DNA from: Zygnema circumcarinatum SAG 698-1b
Taxonomy: Eukaryota; Plantae; Zygnematophyceae
Assembly (NCBI GenBank): GCA_037447605.1
Contig: CM074804.1
Location: 3,759,909 to 3,823,908 of the forward strand
Direction: 5' to 3'
DNA length: 64,000 nucleotides
The position numbers were made by a program, and so were the translations under genes. The notes under the pieces are model-generated. The model was not told where the DNA came from. It did no database searches and saw nothing but the letters and a program-made list of their open reading frames with translations. Below are positions 3,757 to 28,400 of the stretch, piece after piece; the stretch's first letter is position 1; each line of letters opens with the position of its first letter.

Positions 3757-3848
3757 CGCATGCCCCCTCCTCTCTCCCGAATTAGGGTTTGCGTGGTCGG
3801 GGTTAGGGTCAGGACTTGTCATGAAGTTCTGTTTCAGTCACCTGGGGC

Positions 3849-3948
3849 NNNNNNNNNNNNNNNNNNNNNNNNNNNNNNNNNNNNNNNNNNNNNNNNNNNN
3901 NNNNNNNNNNNNNNNNNNNNNNNNNNNNNNNNNNNNNNNNNNNNNNNN
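3849..3948. other. Assembly gap (100 N)
   Basis: Run of N. Confidence 1.
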
Positions 3949-4328
3949 GCACTTCTCCTGTGCAAGCTCTTTCGGCCTCCAAACAACCCCTCAAGCGCGC
4001 ACTTCACTCCAGTAGCGAAGCAACAAAGTCTTCGACTATCTCAACTCCACTCACTCTCTCACTCCTCCTGGCGCTCTGTCTCTCTCCGCCTCCCTCCCTC
4101 CCAGCAGAAGCACGAGAGACGAGCAGCAGGCGGCAGCCCCTATGCGGCCATGGCGGGCAGCGGGTCGTCCCAAGGCTTGCTTCGCATGCCGCAGGGCCCC
4201 GCCGCAACCCGCCCCTCCATGGCCTTCCGGCCTCGCCCCGCCCCGCCCGCCCGGGCCGCCGGGAAGCCCTCGCGGCCCGCCACGTGGCCCGCGCCCCCCG
4301 CAGGAGGTAGCCGTTGCCGTCTCCCTCC

Positions 4329-4719
4329 TAGGGATGGATTAGTTACGATTATATATTATATATTATATATTATATTATACAACTGTGACGAATAGATAAC
4401 GGCTGATATATATTAATTTACAACGCCTTTACAACATGTACGGTCGTACGGTCGTAAGACTGTACGGTATTATGCGGCCCGAGCACGAGCAGACAGAGAA
4501 AACCAGCGAACGCATTTCGCAACGCCAACGCCAAAACGACCTAATTTTGGTATGGTACGACCGTACGACCGTACTCGTACGGTCGTACGGTCGTTAGTTG
4601 TTCAAAACGAGTGGGTATAATATATGTAATAAAGTGTTTTAGTTTGTAATATATTACTAATTTTAAACCCGTTGTAAATTATATAATATATTCGGAATTT
4701 ATAACGCGGGCCATCCCTA
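4329..4719. mobile_element. hAT-type MITE (391 bp), copy 1
   Basis: TIR TAGGGATGG...CCATCCCTA resembles the Ac end TAGGGATG. The 8-bp flanks CTCCCTCC and CTCCGTGC match 6/8 (decayed TSD). AT-rich interior with direct and inverted GTACGGTC/GACCGTAC repeats. No ORF. Confidence 0.8.
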
Positions 4720-4737
4720 CTCCGTGCGGGAGGTCTC

Positions 4738-4780
4738 GTCACGTCATGTCACGTCATGCACGTTTTGTCACGTCACGTCA
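4738..4780. promoter_or_regulatory. Cluster of five ACGT cores (four CACGTCA = TGACGTG), bZIP-type sites; duplicate at 6706-6748
   Basis: gtcacgtcatgtcacgtcatgcacgttttgtcacgtcacgtca seen directly. A G-box CACGTG lies at 4281-4286 on the other side of the MITE. Function is inferred. Confidence 0.4.
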
Positions 4781-5020
4781 AGCCTGCCGCCGACCGCCTT
4801 CACTCAGCCCTGACGCTCGGCCATGCCGTACAGCGGCAGCGGCCAGGGCGGCCGTCCGATCACGCGGGCGGGGCCGCCTGCCCGCGGGGGGAGGACCGTT
4901 GGGCGCACCGACTGACGGAGGAGCGTCTTCGACCGTCCGATCGTCGGGTTTGGCCTTCGAGACACTGCGCGCTGAACCGTCGATTCATTCGCTTAGCTTC
5001 ACTCGCGGAGGTCGGTACGC

Positions 5021-5068
5021 GGTGGCCGTGTCGGTGGCCGTGTCGGTGGCCGTGTCGGTGGCCGTGTC
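5021..5068. repeat. 12-bp tandem repeat (GGTGGCCGTGTC)x4; duplicate at 6989-7036
   Basis: Seen directly. Confidence 0.95.
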
Positions 5069-5246
5069 GGTGGTGGCGGGCTCGCAAGTTGCGATGTTAC
5101 CTTAGAACGCAGTGTCGTGGACCGTTCTACCGTTAATTTGAACTACTGTATGGAACAATTGATGATTTTAGCCGGTCAAGTAAAAAACTATTCGTAATCG
5201 GAGTTCAATAAAAAATATTAGGGGGAGTCAGACCTTGACCAGCGCC

Positions 5247-5256
5247 NNNNNNNNNN
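5247..5256. other. Assembly gap (10 N) interrupting a MITE end
   Basis: Run of N directly after TAGGGGGAGTCAGACCTTGACCAGCGCC. Confidence 1.
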
Positions 5257-5912
5257 GTGTTATAAGAATCCAAAGCAGCGGGCAGCCGCGGACTGTATGC
5301 TGCAACTGACATGCCATTACCGCCCTTCGGCAAGGCTATCAGTCTTCTCAGACCAGTCATCCCACGCTGCTTACCGCAGCCCCCTCTTGTCCTTTTCATG
5401 GCTGCTATCACAAGACGCTCTTCTCCCATGCATCAGGGAGGTCCTGCTCACATTCACATAGACAGACGTTTGCACGAGGAGTGCATCAGCTACAACGGTG
5501 TCCAGGGAACAAGTTCAGCAAGGTGCTGCAAATTGCGCGGAGCGCACATATCGCGACAATGGCCTGTACCCTGCTGGTATTGTGCCTTCCTGAGGTAGCC
5601 AAGAAGTGTGTTTGCGGAACTGCATTACCTCTAGTACTGGGTAGCAAACGAAAGGAAGAGTCTTAGCAGATTAAGCGCAGAGGTCGTGCATTCTTCTCTA
5701 CATTGTTTTCCGAAAAAAATTTAGTCTGATGCAGCTCCCTCCCAAAACTATGCCCACGCGGCTGCCAACACCGAAAATTCGTCCACTCCTACAGCTATCC
5801 TCGACCCAGCATTGCATTCGAGGCCACCAGTCCTCTGCATTGACTAAACCTTGCAAGTCCAAGGAACCTGCAACAAATCGCCCACCTTATCAAGAACGAC
5901 GTGCGTTCTCCC

Positions 5913-7214
5913 GCACTTCTCCCTGTGCAAGCTCTTTCGGCCTCCAAACAACCCCTCAAGCGCGCACTTCACTCCAGTAGCGAAGCAACAAAGTCTTCGA
6001 CTATCTCAACTCCACTCACTCTCTCACTCCTCCTCCTGGCGCTCTGTCTCTCTCCGCCTCCCTCCCTCCCAGCAGAAGCACGAGAGACGAGCAGCAGGCG
6101 GCAGCCCCTATGCGGCCATGGCGGGCAGCGGGTCGTCCCAAGGCTTGCTTCGCATGCCGCAGGGCCCCGCCGCAACCCGCCCCTCCATGGCCTTCCGGCC
6201 TCGCCCCGCCCCGCCCGCCCGGGCCGCCGGGAAGCCCTCGCGGCCCGCCACGTGGCCCGCGCCCCCCGCAGGAGGTAGCCGTTGCCGTCTCCCTCCTAGG
6301 GATGGATTAGTTACGATTATATATTATATATTATATATTATATTATACAACTGTGACGAATAGATAACGGCTGATATATATTAATTTACAACGCCTTTAC
6401 AACATGTACGGTCGTACGGTCGTAAGACTGTACGGTATTATGCGGCCCGAGCACGAGCAGACAGAGAAAACCAGCGAACGCATTTCGCAACGCCAACGCC
6501 AAAACGACCTAATTTTGGTATGGTACGACCGTACGACCGTACTCGTACGGTCGTACGGTCGTTAGTTGTTCAAAACGAGTGGGTATAATATATGTAATAA
6601 AGTGTTTTAGTTTGTAATATATTACTAATTTTAAACCCGTTGTAAATTATATAATATATTCGGAATTTATAACGCGGGCCATCCCTACTCCGTGCGGGAG
6701 GTCTCGTCACGTCATGTCACGTCATGCACGTTTTGTCACGTCACGTCAAGCCTGCCGCCGACCGCCTTCACTCAGCCCTGACGCTCGGCCATGCCGTACA
6801 GCGGCAGCGGCCAGGGCGGCCGTCCGATCACGCGGGCGGGGCCGCCTGCCCGCGGGGGGAGGACCGTTGGGCGCACCGACTGACGGAGGAGCGTCTTCGA
6901 CCGTCCGATCGTCGGGTTTGGCCTTCGAGACACTGCGCGCTGAACCGTCGATTCATTCGCTTAGCTTCACTCGCGGAGGTCGGTACGCGGTGGCCGTGTC
7001 GGTGGCCGTGTCGGTGGCCGTGTCGGTGGCCGTGTCGGTGGTGGCGGGCTCGCAAGTTGCGATGTTACCTTAGAACGCAGTGTCGTGGACCGTTCTACCG
7101 TTAATTTGAACTACTGTATGGAACAATTGATGATTTTAGCCGGTCAAGTAAAAAACTATTCGTAATCGGAGTTCAATAAAAAATATTAGGGGGAGTCAGA
7201 CCTTGACCAGCGCC
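5913..7214. repeat. 1.3-kb segment, copy 2
   Basis: See copy 1. Confidence 0.95.
6297..6687. mobile_element. hAT-type MITE (391 bp), copy 2
   Basis: Same TIRs and flanks as 4329-4719. Confidence 0.8.
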
Positions 7215-13548: not shown

Positions 13549-16189
13549 ATGGGGAGAGAAGTGGAGAGTGTGCATGAAGGAGAGACTGAGCCGCTATGGC
13601 TGAAGCTGCTAGGCGGTGCTTCTCAATTGTGCTCCTGTTGCCTTCCGCTGACGAGACTTCTGCCTTCTCGTTACCATGTACTGGAGCCTACTCAAGCAGA
13701 AGCGGAGCCTATTTACCTTCGGTTTGAGAATCAGGCAACTCATTGCCCCGTGCCAAAACTTATTATGTCCACTTGGCGCGTTGATTTTGTGCAGCTGCAT
13801 TTCCTCATCTTCATGATGTTTTGTAGGCGGAATATTCCATCCATAAGCAAGTTACAGTGTCCAAATTTCTGCATTTCTTGTTGATCATCAGGCCGGTTTC
13901 TATCCGATTGCCTTCATTGCCTGTTGCTTCGAGGCCTTCGTCCTCCACAGCAAAACATTGCGACAGGGGGCGGATGATCAGAGTCACGTCAGCTCAGAGC
14001 AGGCTTCCGGCGTCCTGTGTGCAGACGGACACAGCAATTTCAGTGTACTGGTTCAGCCATACAGGAGAGGAAGTATTTTACTTTCATTTGAACCCGGGAT
14101 GTTCCATTTCACAAGAGAGTTTCGCCGGTAATGTGTGGATGGTGAAGGACCAGGCCTCACAGAAGCTGCTTATCCGTACAAAAGTGTGCTCGCTAACCTA
14201 CAGAACCTTTTTCTCGGGGATAGAATGCGTTTTAACGATTATCTTGAAGCATTTTCTAGGATGTCATTCCCGGAAACCAAACAAATGCATATGGGAAAGC
14301 TGCCTGCCGGCATGATGCATATGTGCCTCGATGGCACTGCCAAGAAGCAGGTCTTCTTTGTTCTAAAGTTTCGGGGCGTGTGCTAGGAGCCTTATTTTCT
14401 TGACGGGCCTTTGGCAATATGCGCTTGACTCCCGTTTGTACTCCTGTCAGGACAAATGCTACATGTGGTCTACCTAGGCACTCTTTTGACATCAATCATC
14501 CCATGTCATGGGGGATCTATTCATCACCATTTTTTTTTAACTGGCAGAATTTTGCTTTCACCCTCTTTCTATTCGTGCCAGGTGGATGACCGGAAGCGTC
14601 AACTTTGCTGTGTACGCCAAGTAACTCTTTATTGTAATGCAGACCCCACCGTGGACGAGCCGACTGAATCAGATGTGAAATTGCCAGCCTGCTATGTACG
14701 GCGGGTGGACACTAAGCAGGGTATTCGAATCGTTGGATATGCTCAAGTATCAATGGAGGCGCTTCGTGCGGCGAAAGGGGTGGTGGAAAACATGTTGAAG
14801 GTGCCATTCTCTTGGCCTAGGCTCATTTGTATTGTAGTATCTCAATTTCTTAGCTCGTTCAATTTCTCTCGAGTTTGTTCAGTTGACATATCGCTTGAGG
14901 AACATAAAGAAACACCGCAATTATTGGCCCTCAGGCCCAGGAAAAAAAACTTTGTTCACATTAATCTTGAAAAGTATAAAAGGTATAGTGAAGGTACATT
15001 GTGATGATGGACAGATTTGTGGAATTGGTCTGTGCTTTTGCACATCATGGCGTAGTGTAGCTTGAGCAAGCTTGTCCGAAGTCAACTTTATGATAAACTT
15101 GATTTGTCTTTTGTTCTTCAGGGATGCCCAAAAAGAATCGTAGATGAGCTTTTGAATCATGACTGCAAAGTGGCCGTAATGGCTCGAGATCAGGTGACTA
15201 CCGATATTTTGGAGCATTCACATCTGCGTGGATCTTCAGTAGCAGATGGGAGAGATTGGGACAGCGAGGTCAGAGGCCTGGGGGGCACCAAGTCTATACC
15301 CACATGTTCAGTAGGAGAGGAAAATGTGTTGCGACGACCACATCCTGAAGATAAGTACTACCAAGAAAGTATATTGGTACACGAATTCGCGCATACAATA
15401 ATGGAGGTGAGCATAGGCTATGTTCTTTGGCAAATGATTACGGTTGGGCATCTCTGCTGCTATTCTTTTCCTGTGGGAGGATGTTTGATTCGGTGTAGAA
15501 AACTAGCTTGATGTCTTGATTGCAGGGAGAATCTGCTCATCCTTTAGGAAATTGTCTCTTGTCAGGTGACTTTTGACGACAAACTTAATCAAAGGATAAA
15601 CTCCATTTACCAGCGTTCCAAGGTGAGCGGTTATGATTGCGTTGACTCTGGTACGTTAATTGCGTCTATTTTGGTTTGGCTTGTGATCACTAGCTAAAAT
15701 GGCTCATGACAACAAGGCTGAGTCTATTCCTTCAGGACGGTATCCCAATTGTGATGCAATTGACTTTGTTATGCCTTCCAAATTTATTTTCATTCTCTGG
15801 TTTTCTTGTTTCTTGATCCTTCTGTTGTCTTGCGCCAGTCAGTGTATAAGATTTAACAACTGCATTAACGGATATTGTGTATTGAACCTTTCTGCACAAA
15901 AATAAGCTAATGTAGTTGAACTGTTGGTTTTTGCTTGTGACAGAACAAGTATACTCCCGGAATTTATATGGCTGTGGATGAGAAGGAGTACTGGGCTGAG
16001 GGAAGTGAGTCCTGGTTCAATGCCAGTCTTCGCGAGGATATAAACGATGGAATCAACACGAGGGAGAAATTGAAGGCGCACGATCCCGAGTTGGCTAGGC
16101 TTCTTCGTGAAGTCTATGGAGATGGGGAATGGAGGTATGACTTTACACCCCTTCCAATGCCACCCAAAAATGTAGACGTGCGGGTGTAA
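13549..16189 (+). CDS. Zinc metallopeptidase (ATLF/Pro-Pro endopeptidase-like zincin) with an N-terminal VHL beta-domain
   Basis: Exons 13549-13734, 14025-~14183, ~14581-14800, 15122-15406, 15566-15622, 15944-16189. VHL-beta-like segment: PIYLRFENQ|TDTAISVYWFSHTGEEVFYFHLNPGCSISQESFAGNVWMVKD. Zincin segment: RGLGGT..PTCSVGEENVL..ESILVHEFAH (HEXXH at 15380-15394), KEYWAEGSESWF (15986-16003), REKLKAHDPELARLLREVY. Splicing between 14140 and 14640 is not fully resolved. Confidence 0.85.
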
Positions 16190-25475: not shown

Positions 25476-28400
25476 ATGGCGGCAGTGTCTCCTTTTAGGG
25501 TTTCGATATGCAGAGGGGCTTTCAGAAGGGAGGAGGGAAGGCAGGGATTCGTGGCGGAGCTGGCGCGGAAGGTGGAGCCGCAGCAGTTGACTGTAGCTGC
25601 ACGGCAGCAGCTATTCGGAAGTGACTTGGAGCAGGTCTCTGCTAAAGGGGGCTTGTCTCTTTCAGGCAGGCGGAGGAGGGAGCATGTGCTGAATGGGCGA
25701 GAGGCGTGGGAAGTGCATTGCTCAAACTCGGAGGTTTTGGAACCATGTTGGCAATACCTGAAGCCAGCTTGCAGGCAGAGTACAAGGGCAAAGGCATCAA
25801 CCAGCTACTCTCCTTACGTCATGGCGGAGCCAGACAGCAACCTTCCTCCGGTACGACCTCTGCAAAGTTTCCTTCTGTTTGGTTCTTTCCACACCTGTCT
25901 CGGAAGTACATTTTGGAGATAAAGGTCTCTTTTCTGGATGTTTTCAAAGCGGAATCTTCCGTGATTGGTCGGATTTTCTATTGTAGAACATCCTTTCCAA
26001 GAAGCAATTTAAGTCGGTTGTTTGCGGCTTCTGGCCTTGATGGCTGCCTTGAAATTGCTGGCTTCAATGAAGTCGCCGTCTTTCTATACCAAGCGGCACG
26101 TTTAATTTCTTGGGTGTTGATTTCCTGTGATGCACAGTTTGCAGAGTCAGCCGAGTTCGAATCTGATCACAACGGTGCGACTTTCCGAGAGGAGGATGAC
26201 GGTGCAGAGGTGTTGATCGAATGCCGCAATATCTACAAGTCATTTGGAGACAAGCACATCCTTAGAGGTGCGAGTTTTAAGGTCAGTTTGACACACTTCA
26301 TTTTTTGTTCGCTGGGTCGTTTGAAAAGAAGTCTTGTAGAAGACATGTTTGCTGAACTACGCGGGAATTCCAGGGTTGTGTCAACAAATTCTGAAGAAGC
26401 ATTTGTCCCAACAGCTTCACATAACTTGCTAAGGCGTGATGGCAACCTGAAGAGTGTTAAGGCTGTTTTTTGACTTTTTGAATGCCAAACGGGGATGTTC
26501 GCCAGATCTACTATGACAGAGGCGAAAAACTCGAGTGCCTATCCACCAATAGCAGAGCATCCTGTACTTGCAGTTTGCATATTGATGTTGCAACTAGGAG
26601 GTGAACTAGGAGGCAGTGGTCCAAGACAGTCTGATTCTGATTAGTCTTGTGCTGTTCCCTCTCACCGGACCTGTTTTGAAGATACGAGTAGGGGAGGCGG
26701 TTGGAATAATTGGCCCGTCTGGTACGGGGAAGTCAACAGTTCTTCGAATCATGGCGGGCCTCCTTGCCCCGGACTCGGTAAGTCCATTGATCCCGGTTTA
26801 CTTGTCTGAACGAGCAATTAATAAAGACAGACATGGCTAGTGGATGTGATTTACAACATAAAGGAAAGAATGTGCGATGTATAATGGTCCAGCGGCATTT
26901 TTTAAGCGCGGTCTTACGTTGGGATTAGCATTTGTCATCAGCGAAGCATTGCTACACTTGTATGAGGGCGAAAAGAATACCCATGCACATCAAGATAAAA
27001 CAAATCTCGCAAATGTCTTCCCTTGGAATAGGAAAAGAGTGAATTGTGACAGCCCAATGTTGTACACAGAATTCCGTGTGACTGAAGTTTTTAGCTTTAG
27101 CTTTTGTTTTTAGCTTTTTAGCTTTTTAGTTTTTATATTTTAGTTTTTAGTTTTTAGCGTTGTAACTGTGGATAATTTATAATCAGTTTATGGCAAGTTT
27201 GTCGAGATCGAGCTCCAAATTCTGAAGTCTGTCTTGTTATAGGCTCCTTCTAAAGTACCTCCTTTGTGTCAGAAGCTACTTCGTCGTATGATTCCTAAAA
27301 GAATTGAAGCTGTGAGGAGATGTTCTGAAGTTGAAGTTTATCCGCTCAATTTCCTTGCCCAATAGCATCCATGGAACAGATAGATGACTTTGATTGCTAG
27401 GCGATCCTTTGGTCTTTGGACATTAGCTATAATACATGCCTCGTCATGTTGCTGGCCTTGGGTTCAGGGTGAAGTGATTGTGTGCGGGGAAACTAGGCAA
27501 GGACTTATAAGTGATGAAGACCATCCGAGATTGAGGATTGGACTGGTAAGCAGTTCGCTAATTCTTTATGCAAGCCTAAGGCCAGCCTTACAAGTATGGG
27601 AAAAAGTGTTGCTTTACAAAATTTCCTAGGTAACTTTTTGTGGATGCATTCTTGCGCAATGATCTCTAAGCTCATTAATTCCTGCATTAGTGTGCCTGCT
27701 GTCTTTCTTGGACGGGGACTAATATTGACTTGTTTAAGTTACATGCCTGCTGTCTTTCTTGGACGGGGACTAATATTGACTTGTTTAAGTTACATTCTTT
27801 ATCTCCAGGTATTTCAGAGTGCAGCTTTGTTTGACTCATTGACCGTCCGGGAAAATGTTGGCTTCATGCTGTGAGTGGGCTTTCTCCATAACTTTCTCGC
27901 TGCTTGAGAGCCCTGATTTCCTGACAACTTCTTCCCATTGTATGTGCCGTAAATTCGATCGTTCCATGATGACGAAGGATTCTTCTTGCTAGGCATAATT
28001 TCTTTAGCAACATTGGTCCTACTGTGAAATTTACCGGCTAATTTTTCTCGCAACATTTTGCAATAGGCTGTACGAGAAATTTGCTCCTAAGCATCTACGG
28101 TGGCTGCTATGCAGGTACGAGCATTCTGACTTGTCTGAGGTTGAGATCAGACATCAGGTCAGCGAGAGCTTGGCGGCTGTGGGTTTAAAGGTGATGATGC
28201 TGTGAGACCCATATTTCTTTGGATTGGAGCCAATTTGCTTTCTCAAGGTCTTGTAGCTTTGGAGCTTGGAAGTGTAGACGAAACTAAAAAACTGAAGCAG
28301 GGAATGTTTTGGAGCAGGGAGTGGAGGAGCGATTGCCTTCAGAGTTGTCGGGGGGCATGAAGAAGCGTGTGGCGCTGGCCAGAGCGATCATCAGTGATGG

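Follow-up and report, generated by a model that had tools for sequence, protein, structure and literature searches.

A gene of the alga Zygnema circumcarinatum predicted to join a VHL-like domain to a zinc protease of the lethal-factor/Pro-Pro-endopeptidase superfamily

A 64,000-nucleotide stretch of the genome of Zygnema circumcarinatum SAG 698-1b (GenBank assembly GCA_037447605.1, contig CM074804.1, positions 3,759,909 to 3,823,908; referred to below as the window) contains, at positions 13549 to 16189 of the + strand, a gene of six exons and approximately 383 codons, which was reconstructed by translation and by alignment to natural orthologs. It encodes an N-terminal relative of the beta domain of human von Hippel-Lindau protein (pVHL), followed by a predicted zinc protease of the superfamily of anthrax lethal factor and the Pro-Pro endopeptidases (PPEPs). 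The start codon is the ATG at 13549, the gene ends with the TAA at 16189, and an in-frame TGA occurs ten codons upstream of the ATG. All introns display GT-AG borders except for the first one, which has a GC donor (Table 1). This donor is supported by three orthologs (P0001, P0151, and P0003), since these proteins read RFENQT without an insert and hence require the ENQ/TDT junction; the intron 1 junction is thus predicted from orthologs. An alternative GT donor at 13750 was rejected, as it would add five residues that are present in no ortholog. Similarly, an extra exon at 14260-14350, which is frame-compatible and resembles the LFVPS strand of pVHL, and a mini-exon at 14582-14621 followed by an intron were discarded, as the orthologs continue from RTK straight to VDDRKRQLCC. 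The six-exon structure was confirmed by these sequence comparisons, and the gene model of the initial annotation turned out to be right, save for details that had not been given there, namely the GC donor of intron 1 and the start of exon 3 at 14582.

A HMMER search with exon 4 against 1.84 billion representatives retrieved 834 cluster representatives (E-value ≤ 1e-3), so that the gene is not a chance reading frame. The best match, P0001 (379 amino acids), is 93% identical across exon 4 and is encoded without introns on contigs of 2.5-2.9 kb assembled from seven runs (SRR8128902-08), with an in-frame stop codon 14 codons before the ATG. These contigs therefore represent the mRNA of a related alga. 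This transcript demonstrates the expression of the ortholog and the completeness of its N-terminus, and it reveals how the exons are joined; indeed, when it was aligned with the window at the nucleotide level, the breaks fell at the modelled introns. Exon 1 aligns with residues 1-64 of P0001 (43% identity), exon 3 with residues 117-190 (70%; approximately 65-75% for exons 2 and 3), exon 4 with residues 191-285, exon 5, which has canonical AG and GT splice sites, with residues 286-304, and exon 6 with residues 304-378 (85%). The introns on either side of exon 3 (introns 2 and 3) are both of phase 0 and are identical in position and phase in a Closterium gene (L086). The fold and whole-protein results given below were obtained with P0001 as a stand-in for the window protein. 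Its AlphaFold model has a mean predicted local distance difference test score (pLDDT) of 88.2 and a predicted template modelling score (pTM) of 0.84, the latter pointing to two domains in a fixed arrangement; residues 1-46 are disordered (pLDDT below 50).

The N-terminal domain was recognized by both profile and fold. Exon 2 alone passed the cut-off of the Pfam VHL profile (PF01847; E-value 9.9e-5, 22.7 bits with a cut-off of 21 bits) and P0001 scored 24.8 bits, while residues 53-135 of the P0001 model superpose on residues 68-156 of pVHL (Z-score 11.6, 1.7 Å over 80 residues). The N-terminal beta-sandwich of 80 residues is thus a true relative of the pVHL beta domain, as the initial annotation had proposed, and the VHL fold, on which that proposal depended, was found in exon 2 as well as in the P0001 model. 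In the alignment of the window residues to human pVHL chains with phmmer, the equivalents of W88, Y98, S111, and W117 of the hydroxyproline pocket were kept and that of H115 was Asn, in exact agreement with the pocket map drawn earlier by eye; the equivalent of N78 of pVHL is kept too. Over 93 VHL-like domains from the protease family described below, conservation is highest in the five columns that correspond to N78, W88, S/T111, W117, and H115, Y98 ranking ninth. Ser or Thr occurs at the position of S111 in all 93 domains and His at that of H115 in 82 of them, and the position of Y98 is variable (Arg in Poribacteria and Asn in some Planctomycetota). No alpha domain or BC-box was found in the P0001 model, in which the structural match stops at residue 156 of pVHL and the chain after residue 135 belongs to the protease. 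Unlike pVHL, the algal protein hence lacks the means of docking to Elongin C and Cullin-2, and it is not a VHL-type ligase adaptor. VHL beta domains also occur outside animals in the partner protein of type X retrons and in a hypothetical protein of Litorilituus, their function in prokaryotes being stated as unknown (PMC7736814, PMC9002001); unlike the algal protein, neither of these two is described as fused to a zincin.

The C-terminal part was recognized at the level of the family. Single exons of the protease part gave no match in Pfam, NCBIfam, or the PDB, a hit of exon 6 to TRF2 in the PDB (E-value 0.08) being dismissed as a chance match, and a feature search of the ESM Atlas with exon 4 returned weak leads only (0.82). 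A profile of 80 family members retrieved PPEP-3 (E-value 4.6e-6), PPEP-1 (3e-5), PPEP-2 (2.7e-3), and lethal factor (0.02) from the PDB, the alignment spanning almost the whole catalytic domain, and 34 of these 80 members matched the Pfam ATLF profile (PF07737) with an E-value ≤ 0.01, the best one being 6.9e-8. Similarly, residues 154-364 of the P0001 model superpose on PPEP-2 (Z-score 16.6, 3.0 Å over 179 residues), PPEP-3 (16.5), PPEP-1 (15.4), and the catalytic domain of lethal factor (12.7), so that the ortholog model fits both structures that the initial annotation had singled out for superposition, namely VHL and PPEP-1. Ten residues are invariant among the 80 sequences, i.e. R and G of RGLGG, the second E of EEN, H-E-x-x-H, a Tyr, and E...A-E of EYWAE, and all of them were found in exons 4 and 6 of the window. 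HEFAH falls on H142, E143, and H146 of PPEP-1, the Tyr on Y178, and the Glu of EYWAE on E185, with the same spacing of seven residues between the latter two. In the profile alignment, R-D-W of the window falls on K101-T-W103 of PPEP-1, of which K101 and W103 are S-loop residues that close over the substrate (PMC12828418). Family profile, fold matches, and catalytic motifs together bear out the ATLF/PPEP-type zincin assigned earlier, and the C-terminal 220 residues are, as judged from the modelled fold, a catalytic domain of the lethal-factor/Pro-Pro-endopeptidase superfamily (MEROPS M34, Pfam ATLF).

Table 1. Features of the VHL-protease gene in the window
Feature	Position	Strand	Description
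Exon 1	13549..13734	+	62 codons; start Met, CSCC stretch, first VHL-like strand IYLRFENQ
CSCC motif	13630-13641	+	In N-terminal stretch predicted to be unstructured
Intron 1	13735..14024	+	Non-canonical GC donor (CAG/GCAACT), AG acceptor
Exon 2	14025..14183	+	53 codons; core of VHL beta-like domain with pocket equivalents
pVHL W88 equivalent, W	14049-51	+	phmmer alignment to human pVHL chains
pVHL Y98 equivalent, Y	14079-81	+	phmmer alignment to human pVHL chains
pVHL S111 equivalent, S	14118-20	+	phmmer alignment to human pVHL chains
pVHL H115 equivalent, N	14130-32	+	phmmer alignment to human pVHL chains
pVHL W117 equivalent, W	14136-38	+	phmmer alignment to human pVHL chains
Exon 3	14582..14800	+	73 codons; last VHL-like strand, RKRQLCC linker, start of N-terminal subdomain of protease
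Exon 4	15122..15406	+	95 codons; S-loop, EEN edge strand, active-site helix
S-loop, GRDWD...RGLGG	15248-15286	+	Exon 4
Edge strand, EEN	15317-15325	+	Exon 4
Active-site helix, HEFAH	15380-15394	+	Exon 4
Exon 5	15566..15622	+	19 codons; helix after active-site helix
Exon 6	15944..16189	+	81 codons plus TAA; C-terminal helices
Family-invariant Tyr	15965-67	+	Exon 6
EYWAE, predicted third zinc ligand	15986-16000	+	Exon 6

Among the characterized members of this superfamily, the PPEPs (MEROPS M34, EC 3.4.24.89; PPEP-1, or Zmp1, of C. difficile, PPEP-2, and PPEP-3) resemble the algal protein over the whole catalytic domain (Z-scores 15-17, approximately 3 Å, 176-186 residues). Both have HExxH, a zinc-binding Glu that is preceded at seven residues by an oxyanion Tyr, and an E-x-x-A-E helix, as well as an S-loop with a basic residue, a Trp two positions further on, and then GLGG. 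However, the sequence identity amounts to 17-22% only, and the PPEPs lack several invariants of the family of the algal protein, namely the R before GLGG, the EEN edge strand, and the Y..E before the active-site helix. In addition, PPEPs are small enzymes that are secreted by Firmicutes and lack a VHL-like domain, whereas the algal protein has no signal peptide. Lethal factor shares the fold (matched over its residues 558-772) and the same type of zinc ligands, although the match is weaker than with the PPEPs; its protective antigen (PA)-binding and substrate-recognition domains have no counterpart in the algal protein, and nothing suggests a toxin function of the latter. Sequence comparison hence favours a distant subfamily of the M34/ATLF superfamily rather than a PPEP. 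In PPEPs, which cut between two prolines, a diverting loop and the S1/S1' pockets impose Pro at P1 and P1'; for the algal protein, Pro-Pro specificity may be taken as a lead only.

Concerning its place in the cell, no signal peptide was found in the upstream region or by a hydrophobicity scan, as in-frame stop codons precede the ATG in both the window and the ortholog mRNA, and the highest Kyte-Doolittle mean over 19 residues was 1.24, no stretch reaching transmembrane hydrophobicity. This agrees with the initial annotation, and the protein is presumably non-secreted. Its N-terminus is rich in Cys (CSCC in the window and FSCC in P0001) and could be a putative lipid carrier. Several eukaryote-like members of the family begin with MG or MGC, where a lipid might be attached to the N-terminus.

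The protease family comprised at least 518 loci, when one genome per bacterial or archaeal species was considered, and the bacterial loci were distributed over Verrucomicrobiota, Planctomycetota, Candidatus Poribacteria, Bacteroidota, Myxococcota, Acidobacteriota, Gemmatimonadota, Armatimonadota, and Pseudomonadota. This species-genome scan was in line with the earlier view that the protease block is mainly bacterial. Most bacterial members open with a signal or lipoprotein leader, as judged by eye. A hidden Markov model built from the VHL-like parts detected a VHL-like domain in 93 of 339 sampled family proteins, i.e. about a quarter. It preceded the protease in 45 of them (the algal proteins and those of some Planctomycetota and Opitutia) and followed it in another 45 (Poribacteria, Verrucomicrobiales, Planctomycetia, and Myxococcales). 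The two independent fusion orders, together with the conserved polar pocket, suggest that the domain cooperates with the protease and has a defined ligand. Other arrangements were encountered as well. Gut- and rumen-type Bacteroidales proteins of approximately 540 amino acids (P0004 and P0154-P0191) carry the protease domain twice in tandem, with a lipoprotein signal and without a VHL-like domain, and some single-domain members are labelled alpha-glucosidase by the Joint Genome Institute, which looks like a mis-annotation. One eukaryote-like sub-clade (P0012, P0015, P0018, P0020, P0034 of Chromera velia, and P0102) is devoid of the VHL-like domain and differs in its N-terminal regions.

Within the Zygnematophyceae, relatives of the protein were found in Mesotaenium endlicherianum (56%), Spirogloea muscicola (49%), and Closterium (approximately 48%), and further eukaryotic ones in Parachlorella, Micractinium, Trebouxia, Apatococcus, Edaphochlamys, Acetabularia, and the alveolate Chromera velia; no land-plant protein was present among the 120 best matches. 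The nearest bacterial sequences are only approximately 35-40% identical. In unrooted trees of the protease domain (FastTree on 240 rows and IQ-TREE with a quick posterior mean site frequency (PMSF) model on 95 rows), five zygnematophycean-type sequences formed one clade (support of 100), and all 41 eukaryote-like rows formed one clade too, albeit with weak support (Shimodaira-Hasegawa-like approximate likelihood ratio test, SH-aLRT, 77). Together with a six-member Acidobacteriota-like group (99), two members of which also have the VHL-like domain first, the latter rows constituted a clade of 47 rows (95) that stands apart from the 48 other bacterial rows. Intron sharing with chlorophytes was rejected, as the closest chlorophyte intron, which follows the VHL-like domain in Edaphochlamys, is displaced by one nucleotide and is of another phase. 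The gene is therefore ancient in algae, and its pattern is consistent with vertical inheritance that predates the split between streptophytes and chlorophytes. Horizontal acquisition had been suggested initially; a recent transfer was not supported, and the gene is not a lineage-specific acquisition, given the relatives across Zygnematophyceae, Chlorophyta, and Chromera; a broad eukaryotic distribution, which had been named beforehand as speaking against horizontal gene transfer, was largely what was found. Nevertheless, a single ancient exchange with bacteria in either direction, possibly of an already fused gene, is plausible.

These data make it fairly probable that the gene encodes a two-domain, non-secreted zinc endopeptidase with a VHL-like docking domain for a substrate that bears proline or hydroxyproline, whereby we infer the catalytic activity, the docking role, and the ligand from sequence and modelled structure. 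The VHL-like domain would dock a part of the substrate that bears proline or hydroxyproline, and would thereby present a nearby bond to the PPEP-like cleft of the zinc protease. Hydroxyproline would be the obvious, albeit unproven, candidate ligand, and the conservation of the pocket over the 93 domains makes the reading of hydroxyproline combined with the cutting of proline-rich stretches more plausible. Several observations speak against this interpretation. His115 is one of the two pVHL residues that form hydrogen bonds with the hydroxyl group of hydroxyproline, and its equivalent is Asn in the window protein and its zygnematophycean clade, with Gln in the case of Mesotaenium. In the window, Lys takes the place of the first tandem Glu (E184 in PPEP-1). 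Of the two Pfam profiles named in the initial annotation, VHL was matched above threshold by exon 2, as mentioned above, but the ATLF threshold was reached neither by the single exons of the window nor by P0001. A cytosolic location would leave few known hydroxyproline-bearing targets, and neither a recurrent partner nor a prolyl hydroxylase was found among 40 genes flanking bacterial VHL-protease genes. Furthermore, the fold and whole-protein results come from an ortholog that is 43-93% identical by exon. It is possible, although we regard it as doubtful, that the VHL-like domain is a genuine hydroxyproline reader and that the family consists of hydroxyproline-directed endopeptidases. In that case, the secreted bacterial forms, such as those of sponge-associated Poribacteria, marine Verrucomicrobiota, and Planctomycetota, would cut hydroxyproline-rich matrix proteins of hosts or algae, and the non-secreted algal forms would cleave a cytosolic protein in direct response to its oxygen-dependent prolyl hydroxylation, which would make the algal system an ubiquitin-independent counterpart of the logic of prolyl hydroxylase (PHD) and VHL in animals. 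Held with the same reserve is the alternative that the architecture is the same but that the VHL-like domain, as a beta-sandwich, serves general peptide binding, glycan binding, or regulation; it might bind unmodified proline-rich or extended peptides, hold the protease in a complex, or offer its pocket to another ligand. The replacement of His115 throughout the zygnematophycean clade, the variation at Tyr98, the bacterial genes without an adjacent hydroxylase, and the unknown function stated for prokaryotic VHL beta domains (PMC7736814) would fit such a role. However, a purely structural role would not need the polar pocket residues at positions 111 and 115 that rank among the five most conserved columns, and Asn and Gln are still capable of hydrogen bonding, as donor or acceptor.

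Two further explanations concern the protease and the origin of the gene. Lethal factor carries an inactive duplicate of its catalytic fold, and the P0001 model matches this duplicate too (residues 35-251, 9% identity), which would fit a reading of the algal protein as a member of the protease family that is catalytically inactive or serves as a scaffold only. This is nevertheless very improbable, as all family-invariant residues are present, including HExxH, Tyr, and Glu, and the near-identity of exon 4 with its ortholog (93%) points to strong constraint. Even less credible is a recent bacterial transfer into the genome or a bacterial contamination of the assembly. The protease block is indeed far more diverse in bacteria, but the gene has five spliceosomal introns and orthologs in three other zygnematophycean genera, two of its intron positions recur identically in Closterium, the distance to the nearest bacterial sequences is large, and the eukaryote-like sequences form a clade of their own, weakly supported as it is.

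The N-terminal domain of a few algal members is automatically labelled as VHL-beta-containing in public records, their protease part being unannotated, and no description of a VHL-protease fusion was found in the searchable literature, in keeping with the earlier suggestion that the protease could be undescribed. The hypothesis on the function of the fusion is well-founded and testable, although so far purely computational. To our knowledge, VHL-type reading of hydroxyproline is known only as the input of an ubiquitin ligase in animals. Here, a VHL-like domain that is best conserved at its pocket is repeatedly linked with a protease, in either order and across two domains of life, and this recurrent pairing provides a concrete and testable hypothesis for the VHL beta domains of bacteria and algae. 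With its hundreds of members, the protease family moreover constitutes a so far unstudied branch of the PPEP/lethal-factor superfamily. Should hydroxyproline be the ligand, the fusion would bear on the breakdown of hydroxyproline-rich matrices by marine bacteria and on signalling that depends on oxygen or hydroxylation in the algae most closely related to land plants, and it might yield tool enzymes to cut hydroxyproline-bearing proteins.

As to the genomic surroundings of related genes, the 40 bacterial neighbours mentioned above included a single DHDPS-family enzyme, a single enolase-superfamily (MR_MLE) enzyme, two proteins of the prolyl-oligopeptidase family, and three amino-acid-binding SBP_bac_3 proteins, which are too few to call a cluster for hydroxyproline use. 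The VHL-protease gene of Parachlorella kessleri (L085; BAAHLN010000023.1, 1-5957) is flanked by a gene for a family-2 glycosyltransferase and, on the opposite strand, by one for a PhyH-type 2-oxoglutarate oxygenase, a single case that may be due to chance but is noteworthy in view of the putative hydroxyproline reader beside the oxygenase.

Elsewhere in the window, a direct tandem duplication of approximately 1.97 kb was found at 3760-7104, in which the open reading frames (ORFs) at 3960-4310 and 4746-5136 recur at 5901-6278 and 6714-7104, respectively. A run of N occurs in the first copy and a hexamer repeat reading AVAVSV in both, and the duplication may reflect an assembly gap at which a repeat was collapsed or duplicated. 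Finally, an ORF within 25706-26473 contains the stretch VLIECRNIYKSFGDKHILRGASFKV, which we take to resemble the start of an ABC-transporter ATPase; this ORF is probably an exon of a neighbouring gene.

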